A DNA stretch of 64,000 nt, from the sequence record NC_021531.1; one strand, 5' to 3'. This document shows, in pieces, positions 6,409 to 14,293 of the stretch (position 1 is its first letter; each line of letters starts with the position of its first letter). Both the position numbers and the translations under genes were made by a program. The notes beneath the pieces were generated by a model that saw only the letters and a program-made list of their open reading frames with translations, did no database searches and had not been told where the DNA came from.

Positions 6409-6933
6409 CTACAGGTGCTGAACCAATTTATTCCACTCAATCGGCTTCTGCTTAATCACCGTAACCACCCCACGGGTGGGCGACCACACAGTTAAGTCCG
6501 GCTGATTACGCACATCGAAATGGAACCAACTGATGTCGGTTTCAAGGAAGTGAATGAACGGGAACTCATTCGGGTTTTGTTGGATATACGCACGAACAGC
6601 TTGCGGGGTATAGTGCTGGAAGGTTAAGTCCATCGCACCGCCGTATTTGTGCATGCTGTCAGAGCTCGCGTAAAGCTCCAGGGCGCGTTCACGGTAATTG
6701 CCGCCCTTCGGTTGCTCTTGATTGATAAAGAACTGTAGCGTGCGTAAGGAGCGCTGTGTCATGCCTTTAGAAGGCGAGTTCACAATAATCGGTCCGAACT
6801 TGTTACGTAATTGCTGTAACGTAACCATTACCAGTGGGTTGATAATGTACGCAGCGTTAGCACCACGACGTTTAATGACATCGGGCGGCATCAGCTCTTC
6901 GAGTTTAAACTGGTTGGGGTTTGGCTGAAACAT
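6409..6933 (-). CDS. Peptidase M15-like zinc peptidoglycan peptidase
   Basis: SMHKYGGAMD (HxxxxxxD) and WFHFDVR motifs, plus TLQQLRNKFGPIIVNS. Start reassigned to MFQPN (6933), which has an AGGAG SD. Confidence 0.75.
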   Translation of the reverse strand: MFQPNPNQFKLEELMPPDVIKRRGANAAYIINPLVMVTLQQLRNKFGPIIVNSPSKGMTQRSLRTLQFFINQEQPKGGNYRERALELYASSDSMHKYGGAMDLTFQHYTPQAVRAYIQQNPNEFPFIHFLETDISWFHFDVRNQPDLTVWSPTRGVVTVIKQKPIEWNKLVQHL

Positions 6934-7597
6934 TCGTCTCTCCTGCGACTGGAATCGGGTACGTGAGGAACGCACGTTTAATGTTTAGGTAATGCACGTG
7001 AGCTTGCTGGTTGGTACGCACCATGGTCATATCTTGCGCGGGGATACCAACTGTTGGGAACTCACGAACAAACTCGTAATTGGCGTTCATGTTAAACGTG
7101 TACGCATTCGGCTTAAAGTAAATACATCCTTTGTTGTCATCAATAAACGACGTCAACCCAAAATGCTTTACTGCCAAATAAAAGGACTGTCGCGTAATCC
7201 AGTTCACGCCTAGTGCTTTCATGGCATACAAGAACATCCGGTCAGCAAAGTTCTTGTCAATCATGGCGTTCAATTTACCCGCCCCGTCGTTGTGGTAGTA
7301 ACCAATGATAGGGATTTTCTGATACAGCAAATCGTGCAACGCGGCAGCCGGGCCGTAATCACCTTCCGGTTTAAACAGAAACTGTAGCTGTGTGGGAATA
7401 GACGCTAAATCGGTTACAAACCCTTTCGGGGCAACCAAATATAAAGGCTTGTCGGCGCTCAGACCGGTTTCCTTTAAAATGACCTCGAGACGTGTCGGGT
7501 CGTCCTCATACAGACCAGCCAATGTAAAACCGAAGGTGTAGTCTTTCGTTAAGATAAACCACTGCTTATCCAAACGACAATACTCAAACTTGTCCAT
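6905..7597 (-). CDS. DUF1353 family protein
   Basis: PKGFVTDLASIP, AAALHDLLY and ADRMFLYAMKALGV motifs. Start MDKFEY (7597) with an AAGGA SD. Confidence 0.8.
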   Translation of the reverse strand: MDKFEYCRLDKQWFILTKDYTFGFTLAGLYEDDPTRLEVILKETGLSADKPLYLVAPKGFVTDLASIPTQLQFLFKPEGDYGPAAALHDLLYQKIPIIGYYHNDGAGKLNAMIDKNFADRMFLYAMKALGVNWITRQSFYLAVKHFGLTSFIDDNKGCIYFKPNAYTFNMNANYEFVREFPTVGIPAQDMTMVRTNQQAHVHYLNIKRAFLTYPIPVAGETNVSAKPQPV

Positions 7598-7629: not shown

Positions 7630-7665
7630 TAAAAAAAGAACAAAGGTGTGCCCCGAAGGGCACAC
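7630..7665 (-). terminator. Intrinsic terminator closing the radical-SAM cassette
   Basis: On the minus strand: GTGTGCCC-TTCG-GGGCACAC then CTTTGTTCTTTTTTT (C-UUCG-G tetraloop). Confidence 0.9.
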
Positions 7666-7668
7666 ACT

Positions 7669-8325
7669 TTACAGCTCAGTTACAAACGTTGCTTTTAAAC
7701 CTTTGAGAGCGGTGTAGTCTCCGTTCTCAGCAGCAATCCGCGCAGTCTGTTTAAAGTCCGTCAGCTTTTCATGCAATGCGTTGGTGCGTGCAACGATAGC
7801 TTCATTCAACGCTTTCAATTCATCCAGCGTGAAATCGAACTTCGCGTTGTTAGCATCCACCCAGTAACCCGGGCTTTGTTCAGTGCTCAGGTAACGCTGA
7901 ATAGCTGCCAGCGCCTTTTCGTCAGTTTGGTAATTGCGCCCTTTAAACTCAAGAGGAGCAACCACCGCTTCACTGTACGCCTGATTTACCCAGCTGATTA
8001 ACTCAGTCAGTAAGCCATAGCACTTGCCGCGCGTAGAAGAACGCTCTGCCTTATGCTCGGCCAAATCAACGCCCAGCACTTCAGAGACGAACTTGTGCGC
8101 CGCTTTAATGGTGAACTTCACTTCTAACGGAGAAAGACCCTGAGTTGTCAAACCTGCGCTTAACTCTTCATCAGTCATCCCGTCCAGCAGGCGGTAGTGT
8201 GCCAGGCGCGCGAGCGTAGGGTTCCACGTCGCATCACTCAGTTCACCATCGACAAACTGTCCATGACGGTCCACCAGTTTACCGCTGTTATAGAAGCGGT
8301 CCTTTATTTCGCTATTACTAAGCAT
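7669..8325 (-). CDS. DUF4376-domain protein (tail-fibre assembly chaperone-like)
   Basis: C-half EFKGRNYQTDEKA..YWVDANNAKFDFTLDELKALNEAI matches the DUF4376 pattern. Overlaps the upstream gene by 22 nt. Confidence 0.7.
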   Translation of the reverse strand: MLSNSEIKDRFYNSGKLVDRHGQFVDGELSDATWNPTLARLAHYRLLDGMTDEELSAGLTTQGLSPLEVKFTIKAAHKFVSEVLGVDLAEHKAERSSTRGKCYGLLTELISWVNQAYSEAVVAPLEFKGRNYQTDEKALAAIQRYLSTEQSPGYWVDANNAKFDFTLDELKALNEAIVARTNALHEKLTDFKQTARIAAENGDYTALKGLKATFVTEL

Positions 8326-8867
8326 TCAGTTTTCCCCACGATGCCAATGTCTCTCAGCAGACCGTAGTCGAGGAATTGGTAGTCCCGGGCCAAGTCATAC
8401 TGCCAGACAAGATTGTTAACCTTTTTGTCGTCTGGGGTTTCAGTGGCCTCATTGAAGACACCAACCAAATCCCAGCACTCGAAATAGTTACACTGTTCCT
8501 GAGCATGACGAACAATCTTAATTTTGTTGTTCGGGAACGACTGCGCCAGAGCCACCAGAGAACCGATGCCCTTACCGTGTTTGGTACGATAAAGGATGGT
8601 CATCTTGGTCGCAGGCGTATCGAGGATACGCTGCTCCAGACCGGTGTTGCGCAGCTCAGCGTTAGCCAGTGAGTTATGGCCTTCTTCCACGCAGTCCAGC
8701 TCAACCATCACGTTCAGAGAATGACGGATCACCAGCTTCTTCACTGTTTCCGTGTAGTTCTCTGCTTTACACAGCAAAGACACGTCAAACAGTTTGTGCT
8801 TAGACAGGAACGCGTCAAGCAGCGTGGTATCAAGCCTCGTAAAATTGTGAATTAGCAATGACTTCAT
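8304..8867 (-). CDS. Hypothetical protein, probable accessory factor of the CXXX/radical-SAM cassette
   Basis: 187-aa ORF overlapping both neighbours. No recognised motif. Confidence 0.6.
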   Translation of the reverse strand: MKSLLIHNFTRLDTTLLDAFLSKHKLFDVSLLCKAENYTETVKKLVIRHSLNVMVELDCVEEGHNSLANAELRNTGLEQRILDTPATKMTILYRTKHGKGIGSLVALAQSFPNNKIKIVRHAQEQCNYFECWDLVGVFNEATETPDDKKVNNLVWQYDLARDYQFLDYGLLRDIGIVGKTECLVIAK

Positions 8868-10188
8868 TGGTCTTTTCCTGAGATTTGTGTGCGTGAGGTT
8901 GTTCGTGCGTTACTGGTTCTGCAATTGCAGGCTTGGCCAGCTTAGGCAGTTTGTTTTCCTGCGAGGCGCGAACACGGCAGTCATAGCAGTTACAGGTCAG
9001 CTCTTTGAACTGATTACCGTAAGAACCAAAACGACGTTCCCACCACTGTGCAGTTAACAGTTTAGCCGTAGTCCAACCGCACTGACGACGTTCGCCGTGA
9101 TACTGCTTACGTGCTTCTTCTTCACCGTCGCCATTTTCATACGCGGCAGCTACGCAAGATGCACAGATGTGTTTCGCTGGGCAGCCCATACAAGCGTCTG
9201 GGTAAGACTTCCACTGAGTCTTAACTTCTTCCAGCAGTTTGCCGCCGTCGGTGTTAACGATTTCACGACCAACAAGCTTAGCAATTGCCTGACGGGTGGT
9301 TACCGTAGACATGAAGCGGTTACAGCCGTAGATGTTACGGTCGAAGCCGAGACAGGTCATGTGAACGGTCGTACCGCAGTGTGGGCGCAGACGGTCTGGG
9401 TTATAACGTACCTGATCGTCGTGCAACAGTTTTTCACGCCAGTCTGGGTTCCACAGGTCATCGACGTTCATACCGTTTGGAGTGATGTGCCCCATTTCAG
9501 CAGTCGGGTCTAAGTGCAGCCCTTTACCAATCCAGTATTCCAACACTTCAATCATCTGGTTAGAAATACCCAGCGCCATGTCACGAGGAATGATATCTTC
9601 AAATACCATGTTCCCGTAGATGGTACCACCGCCCGATTGGTCGATTAACGACTTCATGGATGCAGCGTAATGCTTGAGCGTGTCGTGGGTAAAGGTCGCT
9701 TTGATACCGAGGTCGTTAATCTTCATCGACTTCAGATAGTGATACCCTTCCAGCGCTTTCTCGTACGAGCCTTTGCGCGAGGTAGTGAAGATACGGTGTT
9801 TGTCATGCGTCTCCGGCAGACCATCAATCGATACGCCGATAGAGAGACGCTTATACCAGCGCTCGATAATAGAACGGTTCAGCGGCTTATCAAACAGCGT
9901 GCCGTTGGTGGAGATAGAGAACATGTACGGGCGGTTATCCCGCGCCGCCAGCTCTTCTGCAGTTTCGAACGCTGCAATCAGCAGCTTCGGCTGCAGGAAC
10001 GGCTCACCACCGATGATATCGATGATAGCACCATCCACACCCGGCTTACCTTTATCGCGGTCAAAGCAGGCATGGATAAAGTCAACCACGTCTTCAACGC
10101 GGTTGTTACGCGGGAACTTGCGCTCGTAGCAGTAATCGCAATCGAGGTTGCAAGACAGGTTGGTAACTATTTGGTACGTTACGTCCAT
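8830..10188 (-). CDS. Radical SAM/SPASM peptide maturase (CXXX-repeat target type)
   Basis: CNLDCDYC triad, IIGGEPFL, ISTNGT, VSIDG. SPASM cysteines CGTTVHMTC..YGC and CMGC..HICASC..RQC. Extra CNCYDC near the C-terminus. Confidence 0.92.
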   Translation of the reverse strand: MDVTYQIVTNLSCNLDCDYCYERKFPRNNRVEDVVDFIHACFDRDKGKPGVDGAIIDIIGGEPFLQPKLLIAAFETAEELAARDNRPYMFSISTNGTLFDKPLNRSIIERWYKRLSIGVSIDGLPETHDKHRIFTTSRKGSYEKALEGYHYLKSMKINDLGIKATFTHDTLKHYAASMKSLIDQSGGGTIYGNMVFEDIIPRDMALGISNQMIEVLEYWIGKGLHLDPTAEMGHITPNGMNVDDLWNPDWREKLLHDDQVRYNPDRLRPHCGTTVHMTCLGFDRNIYGCNRFMSTVTTRQAIAKLVGREIVNTDGGKLLEEVKTQWKSYPDACMGCPAKHICASCVAAAYENGDGEEEARKQYHGERRQCGWTTAKLLTAQWWERRFGSYGNQFKELTCNCYDCRVRASQENKLPKLAKPAIAEPVTHEQPHAHKSQEKTNEVIANSQFYEA

Positions 10189-10198
10189 AATGGCCGCC

Positions 10199-11074
10199 TT
10201 ATGCTTGTGGCAAATTCAGGTAGTTATGCAGATACTTGTAAGCATCCACGCCGATGATAGAGGCTATTTTATTACAGCCTGAGTCCACTAACCATTCCGT
10301 GTTCTCACGCAGCCCAATATCCCCATTCGGTTCAACCATCTTCAGCTGACCACATGCGTTACAGTTCATGTTATCGAAGAACTTCTCTAAACGCAGTACC
10401 GTCGAGTAACCGTTCGCCGCGTTCATCTCAAACATCTGGGCTTCGAGCCGTTTCCATCCGTAGATGAAGTTCAGCACGTGGTCCTGATTGAGAGGTTTCG
10501 GCATTAACTTGTCGAACGTCAGCGATAACGCCGCCAAGTTAAGATGATGCAGAGAACTGTGCAGTTGAAGGATGTCTTCGTACCAGCGAGGTTTACTCAC
10601 CATCTCACGCGTCAATACGCCCCACACAGTAACCTTTTCCAGCTCATTGATTACTTCAAAAGCCTCTTGAGCACCTTCGTCAATGAATGCACGCAGGCTA
10701 CGCTCACCACCTTCGTACGCATCGATAGACACGACGATATGGTCAAACGTTTTCAAGAACTCAAGTTGCGACAACTTGAGTTTACGACCGTTGGTGAATA
10801 GCAGGTGTTTTGCGGAAGGAGCGCCACGCCGTGCTTCTTCAACGAAGTCAACCAACTTCGAATAGGAGAGCAGCGGTTCGCCACCAGTCCACAGGAATTC
10901 CTCTACCAGAGGATTTTCTTTTATAATGTCCACCATTGCCTCTTTATGTTTTGTTTTAGAGACATCGCCCTTAGCCATGTGAGCTGCCCCTCCACAGAAG
11001 GAGCAGTTTAAGTTACACTTAGCCGTTATTGCAACGTCAATCATCGTTGCGGATGATTTAGGGGTATCGTGCAT
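10199..11074 (-). CDS. Second radical SAM enzyme (short, Twitch-like C-terminus)
   Basis: CNLNCSFC triad, TGGEPLL, LFTNG, VSIDA. C-terminal CNACGQLKMVEPNGD..GC. Confidence 0.88.
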   Translation of the reverse strand: MHDTPKSSATMIDVAITAKCNLNCSFCGGAAHMAKGDVSKTKHKEAMVDIIKENPLVEEFLWTGGEPLLSYSKLVDFVEEARRGAPSAKHLLFTNGRKLKLSQLEFLKTFDHIVVSIDAYEGGERSLRAFIDEGAQEAFEVINELEKVTVWGVLTREMVSKPRWYEDILQLHSSLHHLNLAALSLTFDKLMPKPLNQDHVLNFIYGWKRLEAQMFEMNAANGYSTVLRLEKFFDNMNCNACGQLKMVEPNGDIGLRENTEWLVDSGCNKIASIIGVDAYKYLHNYLNLPQA

Positions 11075-11999
11075 CCGGATTTTTTCCCCATTGCTTGCTC
11101 ATAAACGAGAAGAGCGGGTCATCTTTACGAACATCTTCGCCGGGAACAATGAGTTTCGGGTCATTATACGCCTGCAGGATGGCGTCTAAGATTTTATTCC
11201 GGCTATTGATTCCGTTAAGTTCTTTCAAACTTACTTCACGGCGGATGAACGAGTCCATTACATGCTGCTCTTCGTCCGAAAGGAGACCGGCCTCGTTGAC
11301 TTTACCCACCAAGAAGGTCATTACTCGGTGCAAGTCAGCTGTGGTATTCGGTTGCTCCCCGTACTCGCTTTGAATCAGGTAGTTCGTCCACGGTTTGCGC
11401 AGTCGCTTGGTAATCTCGTGTGCATCCGTAATCGCTTCCCATCTCATACTACGATGGTTCCACGTAATTTTATACGAATACGCCATGAGGTCAGCCAGCG
11501 TATCGATGCCGAGTTCTTCGTAACCATCGACCGCATAGTAGCGTTCGGTATTGAAGTAATCGTCATCTGGCACTTCATCGCAGTCAACAACGGTGTAGTA
11601 GAACGGGAAGGCTGATGGGTATTCCCAGTTCCAGCCGCGTTGAATCATCGGCTTCATGTTGTTTTCTTTAAACGATGCAAACAGCAGCTCCAGCGGTGGA
11701 GCGTAGTTAAGTACCGCATCGGTAAAGTAGTATTTGTCGTTCACTAATTTACCGACGTAGTCTGTCGTCGCACCGGTACACTTGATGATTTTCACATTCA
11801 GTGTGTCAGAGATGTTGAACTCTTCCAGTACCGTTGACTTATACAGAATGTCGCGAGGACGCAGACGTGGGAACTCAACCGGGTTCATTGCCAGCAAACG
11901 CAGACGGTCATTGACGTGGTCATTAACCGCGTCAGGTAGCCCGATGTGAATCGGGTAGTTGAATGTAGTTCGGAATGCGTAATGCGCATTACTCTTCAT
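11058..11999 (-). CDS. Hypothetical protein in the radical-SAM cassette
   Basis: 313 aa, strong SD AAGGAG, overlaps the rSAM gene by 17 nt. Confidence 0.7.
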   Translation of the reverse strand: MKSNAHYAFRTTFNYPIHIGLPDAVNDHVNDRLRLLAMNPVEFPRLRPRDILYKSTVLEEFNISDTLNVKIIKCTGATTDYVGKLVNDKYYFTDAVLNYAPPLELLFASFKENNMKPMIQRGWNWEYPSAFPFYYTVVDCDEVPDDDYFNTERYYAVDGYEELGIDTLADLMAYSYKITWNHRSMRWEAITDAHEITKRLRKPWTNYLIQSEYGEQPNTTADLHRVMTFLVGKVNEAGLLSDEEQHVMDSFIRREVSLKELNGINSRNKILDAILQAYNDPKLIVPGEDVRKDDPLFSFMSKQWGKNPDARYP

Positions 12000-12010
12000 G
12001 AAAGAACTCC

Positions 12011-12220
12011 TTACGAAGGCCAGGTCACAGCTTTCGCGCCACCTGAAGACGTCCAGCTACAACTACCATTACAACGATAGCTGCCTGCTGCAATATTGTT
12101 TAAACGATTGGAGTTATTAACGGTACCGCGGGTAGCAATGTAGTTAATCGCACTAGCGGTGGTGATATAACCCTCAATCCTCGCGAGTTGCTGTCCAACC
12201 TCGTTTAATGAAACAGCCAT
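12011..12220 (-). CDS. MAVSLN-leader peptide C (short core CNGSCSW)
   Basis: 69 aa, SD GGAGG. Leader homologous to peptides A and B. Confidence 0.8.
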   Translation of the reverse strand: MAVSLNEVGQQLARIEGYITTASAINYIATRGTVNNSNRLNNIAAGSYRCNGSCSWTSSGGAKAVTWPS

Positions 12221-12232
12221 GTGACCTCCCTA

Positions 12233-12634
12233 CTACGGTCCAGAACAGCCGGAACAACCCCCAGAACATGACCCGGAACAGTTACCAGAGCATCTGCCTG
12301 AACACGTACCAGTACACGTACCAGAACACGTACCAGAACACGTGCCTGTGCAACCACCGGAACAACCACCCGCGCAACCACCTGAACAGCTCGACGAACA
12401 GCTAGAGCCACAGGTTGCACTACAGGTTCCGGTACAGCCGCCAGAACAGCCTGCGGAGCAAGTCCAGCTACACGTACCTCCGCAGTGGTAATAGTTCGCG
12501 TCATGACCTGCTAAGCGGTCTACGTTATTGGTAGTCTTGCCCGCAATGTACGATTGGACACCGGCTTCGGTTTTCAGAGCAGCGGCTTCAATGTTGTCCA
12601 GTTGGCCTTTTACAGCGTTTAATGAGACTGCCAT
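12233..12634 (-). CDS. MAVSLN-leader CXXX-repeat peptide B (putative rSAM substrate)
   Basis: 133 aa from MAVSLN (SD GAGGGG), 21 Cys in CXXX repeats, ends CSGP. Confidence 0.88.
   Translation of the reverse strand: MAVSLNAVKGQLDNIEAAALKTEAGVQSYIAGKTTNNVDRLAGHDANYYHCGGTCSWTCSAGCSGGCTGTCSATCGSSCSSSCSGGCAGGCSGGCTGTCSGTCSGTCTGTCSGRCSGNCSGSCSGGCSGCSGP
12301..12348. repeat. Four near-perfect tandem 12-bp units (AACACGTACCAG) inside peptide B
   Basis: aacacgtaccag / tacacgtaccag / aacacgtaccag / aacacgtgcctg. Confidence 0.85.
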
Positions 12635-12645
12635 GGTAATCCCCT

Positions 12646-13038
12646 CTATTGTGGCCCCGAACATCCGCCTGAGCAACTTCCTGAGCAGTTACCTGAACAC
12701 GCCCCACCACAACTCCTGCCACAAGCACCAGAACATGATGAAGAACACGCGCCGCCGCACGTACCCGTACAGCTACCTGAGCAACCTCCCGAGCAAGAAC
12801 TAGTACACGTGCCAGAACATGACCCGGAGCAGTTACCGGAGCAGCTGGAACAACCGTGGGAACAACCTGAAGAACAAGACCAACTACAACTACCGTTGCA
12901 GCGGATTTCTCCGGGGGACATCCCGCCTAAATTATTTGCGTTATACGCTTTTGTGGCCACCTGTCCATCAACCGAAGCGCCAGTTGCAATAGACAGTCTG
13001 GCCATACGCGCATTAACGTCATTGAGTGAAACGGCCAT
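12646..13038 (-). CDS. MAVSLN-leader CXXX-repeat peptide A (putative rSAM substrate)
   Basis: 130 aa, SD AAGGA, 21 Cys in CXXX repeats, ends CSGPQ. Confidence 0.88.
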   Translation of the reverse strand: MAVSLNDVNARMARLSIATGASVDGQVATKAYNANNLGGMSPGEIRCNGSCSWSCSSGCSHGCSSCSGNCSGSCSGTCTSSCSGGCSGSCTGTCGGACSSSCSGACGRSCGGACSGNCSGSCSGGCSGPQ

Positions 13039-13051
13039 ATGCTTCCTTTAA

Positions 13052-13079
13052 CGGGCGAACTTGACATAAAGTATCGCCC
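13052..13079 (-). promoter_or_regulatory. Inverted repeat enclosing a TATG late-promoter-like motif upstream of the peptide genes
   Basis: GGGCGA...TCGCCC arms around CTTTATGTCAAG (minus strand; TATG at 13068-13065). Confidence 0.4.
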
Positions 13080-13093
13080 TGACGTTATAAGAG

Positions 13094-14293
13094 TTACTTG
13101 GTGCCGGCAGCAGACTGAACGTCGCCGCGGGTAGTCAAGTTGGCGTTGACGTGTACGTTGGCTTGTACGACACCACCCGTGTTCTTGTTCAGATACTGGT
13201 CGTGCGGGTTCGCCGCCGATTTGTGGGCTGCGAGGTCAGCGTTGGTTTTCGCCAATGCCTGTTCCAAGGCCGCGATGCGATTTTCGAGACCTTGGTTCGC
13301 TGTGCCCATATCCGCAATCTGCTGCTTCAGGTTATTGGTTTCCTGATTAGCGGCTGCGAGTCCAGCACGCAGGTCATTGAGCTGCTGAGTCAGCAGACCG
13401 ACTTGCGTTTCCAGAATGAGAATCTCATCCATCAGTTCCGCAATCTGTAACTGCGTTTTCTGATAGTTCTGGTCAACCGTGTTGAGCTGGGTATTCCATG
13501 TGCCGATAGAACTGACCAGCGCTGCGATTTTCTGCGCCAAGTCGGTATCGGTCGCATTGAGCGTACCGATATCTTGCAACACGGAGTTGATGCTGCTTTG
13601 CACGTTCTGAATCAACGTACGGACTTCTGACGTGGAGTACACGTCAAGTTGGCCACGCGTCACTTTGTGAACGTTGCCTTCCGCATTACGGTGCTCATCT
13701 AACGCCGCCAGCATCTCTTGACGATACGCTTTGAGCATGTTCTGAATCTGCACCATTTCCGCAGACGCGCCCAAACGAATCGCTTCGTTGAGTTTCGCCA
13801 GCAGGGTAACGATGTATTCAAAACCAAAGAAGTCGCCCACGTCACGGAACGCAGGCGCACCTGCAAACTCATCCGGCACGTTACGGAGTTCATAGAAGTC
13901 GATAGTTGGGTCATCGAGTTCCAGTGATTCAATACACTGGACGATGTTATCGACGTTCGCTGCGTACGGACCACCGACAATGTGGGCGCTGGCGGTGATG
14001 TCGGACGGTACAGCCGAGCGAGTAACAACAATAGCAGTTGCCACTTCGCGGCCACCGGTCATTTTAGTCAATGACGGATGGAGGAGAATTACTTCGTAGT
14101 CGGTACCGCGAACGAGTGGTTTATTCGGCGCGTTCACCGGAGCTAATCGAAGCGTATCAACAAAGAAAGGACCTGTTGGGAATGCAAACGCCCGGTTAAT
14201 CGTTCCTGTGCCGAGTTTAATCGGGTGAGAAACGTTGTTACCGAGGATGGTTCCGAACAGGTCCAACGGGTACTGCATTACTGCCTTACTCAT
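13094..14293 (-). CDS. Virion/tail-fibre-associated protein with coiled-coil C-half
   Basis: 399 aa. N-domain homologous to the N-termini of the three giant fibres (LVRGTDYEVI). Heptad repeats. H..NPH motifs. Confidence 0.7.
   Translation of the reverse strand: MSKAVMQYPLDLFGTILGNNVSHPIKLGTGTINRAFAFPTGPFFVDTLRLAPVNAPNKPLVRGTDYEVILLHPSLTKMTGGREVATAIVVTRSAVPSDITASAHIVGGPYAANVDNIVQCIESLELDDPTIDFYELRNVPDEFAGAPAFRDVGDFFGFEYIVTLLAKLNEAIRLGASAEMVQIQNMLKAYRQEMLAALDEHRNAEGNVHKVTRGQLDVYSTSEVRTLIQNVQSSINSVLQDIGTLNATDTDLAQKIAALVSSIGTWNTQLNTVDQNYQKTQLQIAELMDEILILETQVGLLTQQLNDLRAGLAAANQETNNLKQQIADMGTANQGLENRIAALEQALAKTNADLAAHKSAANPHDQYLNKNTGGVVQANVHVNANLTTRGDVQSAAGTK

Follow-up and report, generated by a model that had tools for sequence, protein, structure and literature searches.

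The closest described counterparts of the locus reported here pair a repetitive substrate with radical S-adenosylmethionine (SAM) enzymes. In the TIGR04114/TIGR04115 system, a substrate with a cysteine at every fourth residue in tandem (a CXXX repeat) is encoded next to a SPASM-type radical SAM enzyme; we understand NCBIfam to have entered this pairing, about fifteen years ago, as an orphan system resembling those of peptides that ribosomes synthesize and that are modified post-translationally (RiPPs). In the His-Xaa-Ser system (HxsB/HxsC, TIGR03978/TIGR03977), the substrate is likewise a short tandem repeat and a SPASM-type enzyme is joined by a smaller radical SAM enzyme of the non-SPASM type; we know of no phage or fiber context for it. 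In the CrpA/CrpC system of the archaeon Methanococcus voltae, the SPASM radical SAM enzyme CrpC installs thioether cross-links on a large cysteine-repeat protein rather than on a short peptide (PMC13692751). Here we describe a cassette of eight genes in a 64,000-nucleotide stretch of record NC_021531.1 (this whole stretch is called the window below) that we judge, with moderate confidence, to be a tail-fiber tip module whose maturation, by radical SAM cross-linking, takes place in the cell; we infer both this chemistry and the presence of the cassette's peptides in the virion. The window matches Cronobacter phage CR5 (NC_021531) with 100% identity; CR5 is a Derbicusvirus with a genome of 223,989 bp that belongs to the SPN3US-like group of giant (jumbo) phages. 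An earlier reading of the letters alone (the sequence-only reading) had likewise proposed a jumbo phage. Positions are those of the window (record position minus 124000).

The cassette encodes, from its 5′ end, three cysteine-repeat proteins (pepA, pepB, and pepC), a 313-residue accessory protein, two radical SAM enzymes (rSAM-2 and rSAM-1), a 187-residue protein, and a DUF4376 protein; these genes and all other features of the window given with coordinates below lie on the minus strand. The list of open reading frames (ORFs) places all eight genes where the sequence-only reading had put them, with the three overlaps that it had claimed (17, 38, and 22 nt) and with remaining gaps of 10–12 nt, which it had given as about 10 nt. 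The hairpin with a TATG loop upstream of the cassette and the terminator downstream of it are also found at the places proposed. A purine-rich ribosome-binding site stands just 5′ of the ATG of pepA, pepB, pepC, and the gene for the 313-residue protein.

As the sequence-only reading had claimed, the first three genes encode paralogous cysteine-repeat peptides. pepA (130 residues; 12646–13038) has an N-terminal segment of 46 residues followed by 84 residues that hold 21 cysteines with a four-residue period, and its paralog pepB (133 residues counted from its ATG; 12233–12634) has a segment of 50 residues followed by 83 residues, again with 21 cysteines. pepC (69 residues; 12011–12220) is a short paralog that shares the N-terminal segment and the junction motif, has only 2 cysteines, and is without the long repeat. 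The repeat tracts of pepA and pepB are 25% cysteine, contain no acidic residue and one basic residue, and consist otherwise of serine, glycine, and threonine; among 14 orthologs, 238 of 279 units, counted from one cysteine to the next, have a length of exactly 4 residues. Both long proteins pass the cutoff (20 bits) of TIGR04114, the model for CXXX-repeat targets, with 31.5 bits for pepA and 33.7 bits for pepB, and pepC gives no match to this model. All three fall into phrog_6085 (5e-35, 9e-38, and 1.6e-23, respectively), a family whose function is unassigned in PHROGs. An invariant junction motif, common to the three paralogs, marks the place where the N-terminal segment joins the first cysteine. 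A Cys-Ser-Gly-Pro end is mostly common to pepA and pepB, and pepC is always short, with 2–5 cysteines among its orthologs. Each of the three forms a separate conserved ortholog group in five genera.

Substitutions between orthologs cluster at third codon positions (for example, 53 versus 19 and 12), and 20–21 of the 21 cysteines are retained in each ortholog pair compared (21 of 21 for pepA). This bias, together with the retention of cysteine, identifies the frame named here as the coding frame and rules out the other open frames that arise from the G+C-rich repeat. In the CR5 record, pepA and pepB are unannotated and a plus-strand ORF, CR5_157, is called over both; in phage SPN3US (11997–13026 of our locus L002), the annotation gives the middle peptide, gp166, in a wrong frame and omits its two companions.

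In the characterized substrate of PapB-type enzymes, each cysteine has an acidic acceptor residue at a fixed distance, whereas the 83–84-residue repeats of pepA and pepB contain neither aspartate nor glutamate. The repeat chemistry differs also from that of the His-Xaa-Ser system, and the N-terminal segment is of a different type from that of substrates in true TIGR04115 loci. Like pepA, pepB, and pepC, the Crp substrates are paralogs with a common N-terminal segment, there of about 47 residues (PMC13692751); their units, in contrast, are 17 or 34 residues long with C-X-X-Q/D, and the CR5 repeat has a four-residue period and no acidic or amide acceptor. Because the CR5 repeat is devoid of acidic and amide side chains, the acceptor atoms of any cross-link must differ from those of the characterized cases.

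The link between this repeat and tail fibers comes from other phages. More distant rSAM-1 relatives (29–38% identity) are encoded on other phage contigs, which include unrelated P2-like and lambda-like phages and other jumbo phages, and in loci L009 and L017–L020 of our set the cysteine repeat is the C-terminal end of a genuine tail-fiber protein, which in L019 has 451 residues. The fiber identity of these proteins is given by matches to tail-fiber PHROGs, a P2 gpH-like N terminus, and collagen-like or His-rich fiber repeats. In L009, a siphophage with a lambda J-type protein, a 258-residue protein with His-rich fiber repeats ends in the pepB junction motif and repeat (BLASTP 2e-11) and is followed by a homolog of the 313-residue protein (7e-08) and then by three radical SAM enzymes. 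In L018, which is P2-like, the order is a P2 gpI-type gene, a 384-residue gpH-like fiber with the terminal repeat, a member of the 313-residue family, homologs of rSAM-1 and rSAM-2, a DUF1353 gene, sheath, and tube. In L020, also P2-like, a 401-residue collagen-like fiber with the CR5 junction motif and 28 cysteines at its end precedes rSAM-2, a 313-family gene, and rSAM-1, after which come sheath and tube. Both loci retain the P2-like order, and their enzymes sit between the fiber gene and the sheath and tube genes, which is the usual place of fiber-assembly genes. L017 has a 482-residue fiber with many tail-fiber PHROG matches and the terminal repeat, then a 313-family gene and rSAM-1, and no rSAM-2-like gene. 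In L019, a 284-kb phage contig, the fiber is followed by a 313-family gene and a fused rSAM-2/rSAM-1 gene, and on a 178-kb contig (L010) the order is a 2257-residue protein, a DUF4376 protein, a 120-residue CXXX protein, a 313-family protein, and two radical SAM enzymes. Thus, homologs of the 313-residue protein adjoin fiber-CXXX proteins and radical SAM enzymes in L009, L010, and L017–L020, rSAM-2-like genes are found in L009, L018, L019, and L020, and the CR5 junction motif recurs in L009 and L020. Fusions are classic evidence that proteins encoded separately elsewhere act together, and these loci would link both radical SAM enzymes and the 313-residue family to a cysteine repeat borne by a fiber.

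In CR5 itself, the gene just 5′ of pepA is CR5_158 (13094–14293), which lies outside the cassette and encodes a 399-residue tail-fiber-type virion protein with an N-terminal domain and a long coiled coil. This protein matches phrog_2163 from end to end (5.7e-100) and also matches tail-fiber PHROGs, and we propose it as the carrier of the cysteine-repeat tip proteins. The last gene of the fiber-side block encodes the 218-residue DUF4376 protein (7669–8325), which matches PF14301 over residues 108–200 with 45.8 bits against a cutoff of 25. Experiments on Alteromonas phages V22 and A5, and on a Campylobacter prophage, have shown DUF4376 proteins to be required fiber chaperones, and they have been likened to the C terminus of the Mu fiber-assembly protein Tfa (PMC7289586, PMC10579305, PMC7882524). 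By its domain, therefore, the 218-residue protein is a tail-fiber assembly chaperone, and the tail chaperone named in the sequence-only reading is borne out by the PF14301 match and the published role of this domain. A fiber gene followed by a dedicated chaperone gene is likewise the arrangement of P2 H/G, Mu S/U, and Alteromonas phage V22 gp26/gp27, and DUF4376 is also the domain of the CR5 chaperone. CR5 differs from these modules in that three cysteine-repeat proteins, two radical SAM enzymes, and two further proteins are encoded between the fiber and chaperone genes; we know of no described fiber module with redox enzymes that covalently modify the fiber.

rSAM-1 (452 residues; 8830–10188) is identified by a match to Pfam Radical_SAM (1.5e-12). 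Two sets of its cysteines are invariant among 13 relatives with identities down to 23%: C13, C17, and C20, which make up the radical SAM triad, and C271, C289, C333, C336, C342, C345, and C370. The latter seven form the SPASM pattern for two auxiliary clusters, and no Pfam SPASM model is listed for rSAM-1 at E ≤ 0.01. The best-scoring characterized relatives, PapB (NF047865) and CteB (5WGG), also combine a radical SAM core with a SPASM cysteine set. The best NCBIfam matches of rSAM-1 are the ranthipeptide maturase PapB, with 117.6 bits against a cutoff of 340, and TIGR04115, with 112.9 bits against a cutoff of 350; when enzymes from viral contigs were scored on TIGR04115 as positive controls, L050, L025, and L047 reached 474, 434, and 446 bits, which makes them true members. 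By the curated cutoffs, rSAM-1 is a distant, phage-only branch outside both the TIGR04115 and PapB families. The link to TIGR04114 and TIGR04115 that the sequence-only reading had drawn holds, in that the peptides pass TIGR04114 and TIGR04115 is one of the two top matches of rSAM-1; as a refinement, the enzyme itself falls below the TIGR04115 cutoff. Apart from these scores, the CR5 genes share with the TIGR04114/TIGR04115 system the placement of substrate and SPASM-type enzyme 2–4 genes apart in the same operon-like block, and they add to it the second radical SAM enzyme, the 313-residue family, the 187-residue protein, and the DUF4376 chaperone.

The closest solved structure to rSAM-1, and its sole sequence match in the PDB, is the thioether-forming CteB (1.2e-07), aligned from CteB residue 106 onward. 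Since the radical SAM motif of rSAM-1 starts at residue 13, this alignment leaves no room for an N-terminal peptide-binding domain, and searches of Pfam and NCBIfam with every cassette protein gave no match to a PqqD-type domain, which resembles the leader-binding RiPP recognition element (RRE). CrpC, in contrast, is reported with a predicted RRE (PMC13692751). In the jumbo-phage clade, residues ∼400–452 of rSAM-1 form a C-terminal extension with a further conserved Cys-x-Cys-x-x-Cys cluster and a conserved Phe-Tyr-Glu-Ala end, both of which are absent from shorter relatives.

The second enzyme, rSAM-2 (291 residues; 10199–11074), matches Pfam Radical_SAM (8e-12) and is without a full SPASM domain, so that the sequence-only reading was right in seeing two radical SAM enzymes of which one, with the seven-cysteine set, is of the SPASM type. 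C20, C24, C27, and the GGE and TNG motifs of rSAM-2 are invariant and C241 and C267 nearly so, with two or three conserved C-terminal cysteines. Its NCBIfam matches are generic only, and HxsC is second best (46.7 bits, cutoff 268); rSAM-1 scores 56.3 bits on HxsB (cutoff 370). The RefSeq start of CR5_154, at 10978, drops the radical SAM cysteine triad (residues 20–27), and rSAM-2 of relatives is annotated in the longer form; the longer form given in the sequence-only reading is thus the correct one. In L019 (5131–7191), one 686-residue protein has an rSAM-2-like N-terminal half and an rSAM-1-like C-terminal half, a fusion that suggests that both enzymes work together.

The leader-plus-core layout of the peptides, the occurrence of the "precursors" as three paralogs, and the SPASM maturase next to them also match the logic of a genuine RiPP, in which the N-terminal segment would be a leader and the cysteine repeat a core that is cross-linked, cut off, and set free at lysis to act as an antimicrobial or a signaling peptide; cysteine-repeat peptides of 72–94 residues are, in addition, found beside related radical SAM enzymes in bacterial metagenome-assembled genomes (MAGs). 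Pfam, NCBIfam, and PHROGs searches with the eight genes and two neighbors, however, found no protease, exporter or other transporter, or immunity family, which agrees with the sequence-only reading, where no exporter, leader protease, or immunity gene had been recognized in the cassette. Furthermore, rSAM-1 is without the N-terminal peptide-binding domain that CteB has before its core, the repeat is covalently within tail-fiber proteins of five other lineages, and the cassette always lies in the fiber cluster and ends with a fiber chaperone. The differences from ranthipeptide and sactipeptide systems are of the same kind: rSAM-1 scores far below the PapB cutoff and has no N-terminal peptide-binding domain, the substrate is 130 residues long with 21 cysteines, and the locus has no protease or exporter and is placed in a fiber cluster. 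Release as a RiPP is, on this evidence, distinctly improbable. What the evidence favors is the central proposal of the sequence-only reading, a cross-linked virion part such as a fiber tip rather than a secreted antimicrobial, as the repeat is fused to fiber C termini beside the same enzymes and the cassette lies between fiber and fiber-chaperone genes. The "precursors" of that reading look less like RiPP peptides with a leader and a core than like small, detached fiber-tip proteins.

The cassette is conserved as a unit in SPN3US-like phages and is syntenic across all 62 of their genomes. rSAM-1 is present in 62 SPN3US-like records (61–100% identity) from phages of Erwinia, Salmonella, Cronobacter, Escherichia, and Proteus, and a pepC-like ORF is present in 61 of these, so that in related phages the enzyme is not routinely found without the peptides; pepC orthologs, known from 61 phage records, are present in every genus aligned. 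From the large fiber genes to the DUF4376 gene, the gene order is the same in Derbicusvirus, Wellingtonvirus, Erskinevirus, Machinavirus, and Seoulvirus, and the genes 3′ of the DUF4376 gene vary among SPN3US-like genera. Among 50,697 deposited phage genomes, the system is limited to this clade and three uncultured fecal contigs. Proteins annotated as "radical SAM" in Salmonella phages SPFM8, 9, 15, and 20 cover only 4–19% of rSAM-1 and have no Pfam match.

The published list of 86 SPN3US virion proteins runs gp155, gp158, gp160, gp167, gp168 onward, and gp167, the homolog of the 399-residue CR5 fiber protein, and gp168 are abundant in these virions (PMC5694885, supplement); the latter, a tail protein, has a relative at the baseplate periphery of phiKZ (PMC5105663). 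The products gp161–gp165, which are the homologs of the DUF4376 protein, the 187-residue protein, rSAM-1, rSAM-2, and the 313-residue protein, are absent from the list, which indicates that these enzymes and accessory proteins are not virion components. Proteomics that used the CR5 and SPN3US annotations could not detect the three peptides, because their correct frames were missing from the database and trypsin has only one cleavage site in each repeat.

The peptides have so far been detected in no virion, a fact that would also suit cysteine-repeat proteins that act inside the cell as non-virion helpers, either metal or iron–sulfur scaffolds or transient caps that aid fiber folding and are then discarded. 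The 25% cysteine content together with glycine and serine, and the two adjoining genes for iron–sulfur enzymes, fit such a role, and DUF4376 chaperones can cap fiber tips transiently (PMC10579305). The strict four-residue period and the conserved number of cysteines, on the other hand, suit a regular structural element, and we regard an intracellular helper as unlikely.

Beyond the SPN3US-like phages, relatives of rSAM-1 are encoded on 153 viral stretches (IMG/VR) and 366 genome stretches. A cysteine-repeat ORF lies on the same strand within 1–5 genes of the radical SAM gene in 69 of 90 loci, or 43 of 51 groups at 90% radical SAM identity, as counted by a regular expression that missed L017–L019, which qualify by eye. 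These cysteine-repeat proteins reach 480–551 residues and up to 92 cysteines, and in most of them the N-terminal domain, of ∼110 residues, is a different one. The fiber gene of a single cluster stands one or two places upstream of the cysteine-repeat ORF in 31 loci, the tail annotation of these wider loci resting on a few cluster representatives; the representative of this cluster matches phrog_2163 (1e-50) and tail-fiber PHROGs and is preceded by baseplate-wedge and P2 I-like genes. phrog_2163 is also the family of the 399-residue CR5 protein just 5′ of pepA. True TIGR04115 members in gut-phage contigs, too, are located just after a tail-fiber gene. When one genome per bacterial and archaeal species was scanned, the closest rSAM-1 relatives reached only 29% identity, and cysteine-repeat ORFs were present in 12 of the 80 loci kept, including 9 of the 12 closest.

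The distance of rSAM-1 from all characterized families and the generic matches of rSAM-2 would also allow peptides that are fiber parts held only by disulfides or metal ions and enzymes that modify something else, such as the large fiber proteins, a cofactor, or a host target. Against this, the repeat and the radical SAM enzyme occur together in otherwise unlike phages, in those 43 groups and, by eye, in L017–L019 as well, and NCBIfam defines the enzyme family by this very pairing. We therefore hold a different substrate to be highly improbable.

Several loci of this wider set have further features. In 17 IMG/VR loci (for example, L036, 9902–11140), a reverse transcriptase gene (phrog_1423, 3.7e-40) lies a few genes from the fiber/CXXX/radical SAM module; it is possibly part of a diversity-generating retroelement directed at a fiber gene. 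On a 179-kb contig (L012) with a 201-residue CXXX protein that has 27 cysteines in its tract, several genes, including the radical SAM homolog, contain in-frame stops when read with the standard bacterial code, and translation of the gene as called does not yield the query; both observations point to reassignment of a stop codon in this phage. L080 encodes three cysteine-repeat proteins (140, 551, and 421 residues), four ORFs of the radical SAM family, and a gene of the tail-fiber cluster; the repeat of its 140-residue protein is a two-residue Cys-Asp/Asn period.

The 313-residue protein (11058–11999; phrog_8030) belongs to a small, phage-only family: an exhaustive HMMER scan of 1.84 billion representative proteins matched just 30 clusters, and word-indexed protein searches had returned only 5–6 members. 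The family always stands beside this rSAM-1 branch. In the family alignment, only M1, G214, A221, and D222 are invariant. An AlphaFold2 model built from 29 sequences (predicted local distance difference test score, pLDDT, 91.8; predicted template-modeling score, pTM, 0.88) is rich in beta structure in its N-terminal half and helical in its C-terminal half; a first model from six sequences (pLDDT 49) was unusable. With the later model, Foldseek found no significant match in the PDB and only the protein's own ortholog in BFVD. A protein-kinase fold was considered and rejected, as the kinases that head the Foldseek lists for the PDB and BFVD (template-modeling score 0.12–0.16, probability <0.1, root mean square deviation ∼19 Å) are noise and no kinase-type catalytic residues are conserved. 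The only PDB sequence match of the family, a de novo designed protein at E = 0.36, was also rejected, as was the best one of the 187-residue family (E = 0.07). Small accessory ORFs from true TIGR04115 loci show no profile link to the 313-residue family (hhalign probability <1%), and an NCBIfam search with these ORFs gave no match. The 187-residue protein (8304–8867) has phrog_7988 as its sole match and none in Pfam, NCBIfam, or the PDB; it is confined to the SPN3US-like clade and is syntenic in all relatives examined.

Based on the comparisons above, we propose the following course of tip maturation. pepA, pepB, and pepC would be small fiber-tip proteins whose first 46–50 residues correspond to the fiber segment that precedes the repeat in the fiber-fused phages. 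This N-terminal segment would probably have two roles, as a recognition handle for the maturation enzymes and as the joint to the 399-residue fiber. In the infected cell, rSAM-1, the predicted cross-linking enzyme, would install covalent cross-links along the tract with a cysteine at every fourth residue. The links would most likely be thioethers from cysteine sulfur to carbon, as in the nearest characterized relatives and in CrpA/CrpC, and they would convert the Gly/Ser-rich tail into small rings joined in a ladder, a stiff distal element that resists proteases. rSAM-2 would make a second radical modification. The 313-residue protein may be a substrate-presenting partner, a probable role given that it travels with this enzyme branch in every lineage and that rSAM-1 itself is without a peptide-binding domain. 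The DUF4376 chaperone would assist the folding of the tip and its joining to the fiber (gp158 in CR5), and the enzymes would be left behind in the cell.

Some observations weigh against a cross-linked fiber tip. rSAM-1 scores far below the cutoffs of every characterized maturase family, and the repeat has no acidic residues, unlike the archaeal C-X-X-Q/D units. pepA, pepB, and pepC have been seen in no virion, and the published proteomics could neither find nor exclude them. The loci of the wider family were selected by similarity to rSAM-1, so that the co-occurrence counts are not an unbiased sample. The CR5 fiber and the fiber cluster of the gut phages are linked at the profile level only, pairwise BLAST giving one short motif. 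Finally, four loci from bacterial MAGs (L097, L102, L104, and L116) have ORFs of 71–94 residues with a short N-terminal part and 8–16 cysteines at CXXX spacing near distant radical SAM enzymes. Judged from these ORFs, the wider family seems to comprise both fiber proteins and precursors of a classical RiPP-like kind, and not all of its members need be fiber parts.

The fiber-tip interpretation of the CR5 cassette can be extended to the CXXX-repeat/radical SAM family as a whole, which would then serve mainly to mature fiber tips of phages and prophages; in SPN3US-like phages, a heterotrimer of pepA, pepB, and pepC would make up a single thin, thioether-laddered needle that ends the gp158/gp167 fiber and contacts the host surface. 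We put this extension forward only tentatively and consider it rather doubtful.

The intrinsic terminator that ends the cassette (7636–7665) has a G+C-rich stem of 8 bp (7646–7665) with a 4-nt loop, followed by a T-run, and folds with −19.4 kcal/mol (z = −5.2; 0 of 200 shuffles as stable). Between the fiber gene and pepA, a 55-nt spacer folds with −16.3 kcal/mol (z = −3.1) and contains the hairpin 13053–13079, which has TATG (13065–13068) in its loop. A hairpin is found at the same spot in 7 of 7 phages compared (CR5 and L002–L007), with an invariant TATG at the apex and different stem sequences; folded singly, the seven spacer hairpins stay paired with energies between −13 and −26 kcal/mol, and a T-run comes after some of them. 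RNAalifold gave no consensus on the spacer alignment, in which MAFFT had placed the stems out of register. A strict scan of the whole window for perfect hairpins with a TATG loop found one other site versus 2.6 expected, which is no enrichment. We take TATG to be the late-promoter core of phiKZ-like phages, and the hairpin may be a late-promoter signal, a terminator signal, or both combined. Across the whole window, TATG is strongly depleted, with 244 sites versus 398 ± 20 in dinucleotide-preserving shuffles, every one of which had more; this fits avoidance of a functional signal. A sigma-70 promoter scan found fewer sites than expected by chance and is uninformative for this type of phage.

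The gene just after the cassette terminator, CR5_150 (6905–7597), encodes a DUF1353 protein (PF07087, 69 bits) that falls into phrog_1158, a family named "tail assembly chaperone." In L018, a DUF1353 gene (8023–8388) stands directly after rSAM-2. The DUF1353 protein may be a further member of the fiber module.

The CXXX-repeat/SPASM pairing had thus been catalogued already, and cross-linking by thioethers on the scale of a whole protein has one recent archaeal precedent. New here are the phage tail-fiber context, the fiber-fused forms, and the extra conserved partners, namely the second radical SAM enzyme, the 313-residue family, and the DUF4376 chaperone. A literature search, which was not exhaustive, found no paper that ties SPASM or other radical SAM enzymes to tail fibers or that describes the function of the CXXX-repeat family, and the preprint on the Goslar virion structure makes no mention of such genes. 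To our knowledge, phage tail fibers are stabilized by trimerization, metal ions, and chaperones, and no case is known to us in which enzyme-installed covalent cross-links do so.

The reading of the cassette as a fiber-tip module would also explain three conserved genes that were missed or misframed in the well-studied model phage SPN3US, and existing proteomes of virions and infected cells, together with cryo-electron microscopy maps, are data in which the prediction can be checked directly. If it is true, radical SAM chemistry of the kind known from RiPPs builds part of a virus particle, an orphan family of enzymes and substrates gains a biological role, and many metagenomic "RiPP clusters" of the CXXX-repeat family would really be phage tail modules. 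If the broader proposal of a needle were also true, this would be the first receptor-binding structure of a virion to be made by radical chemistry.

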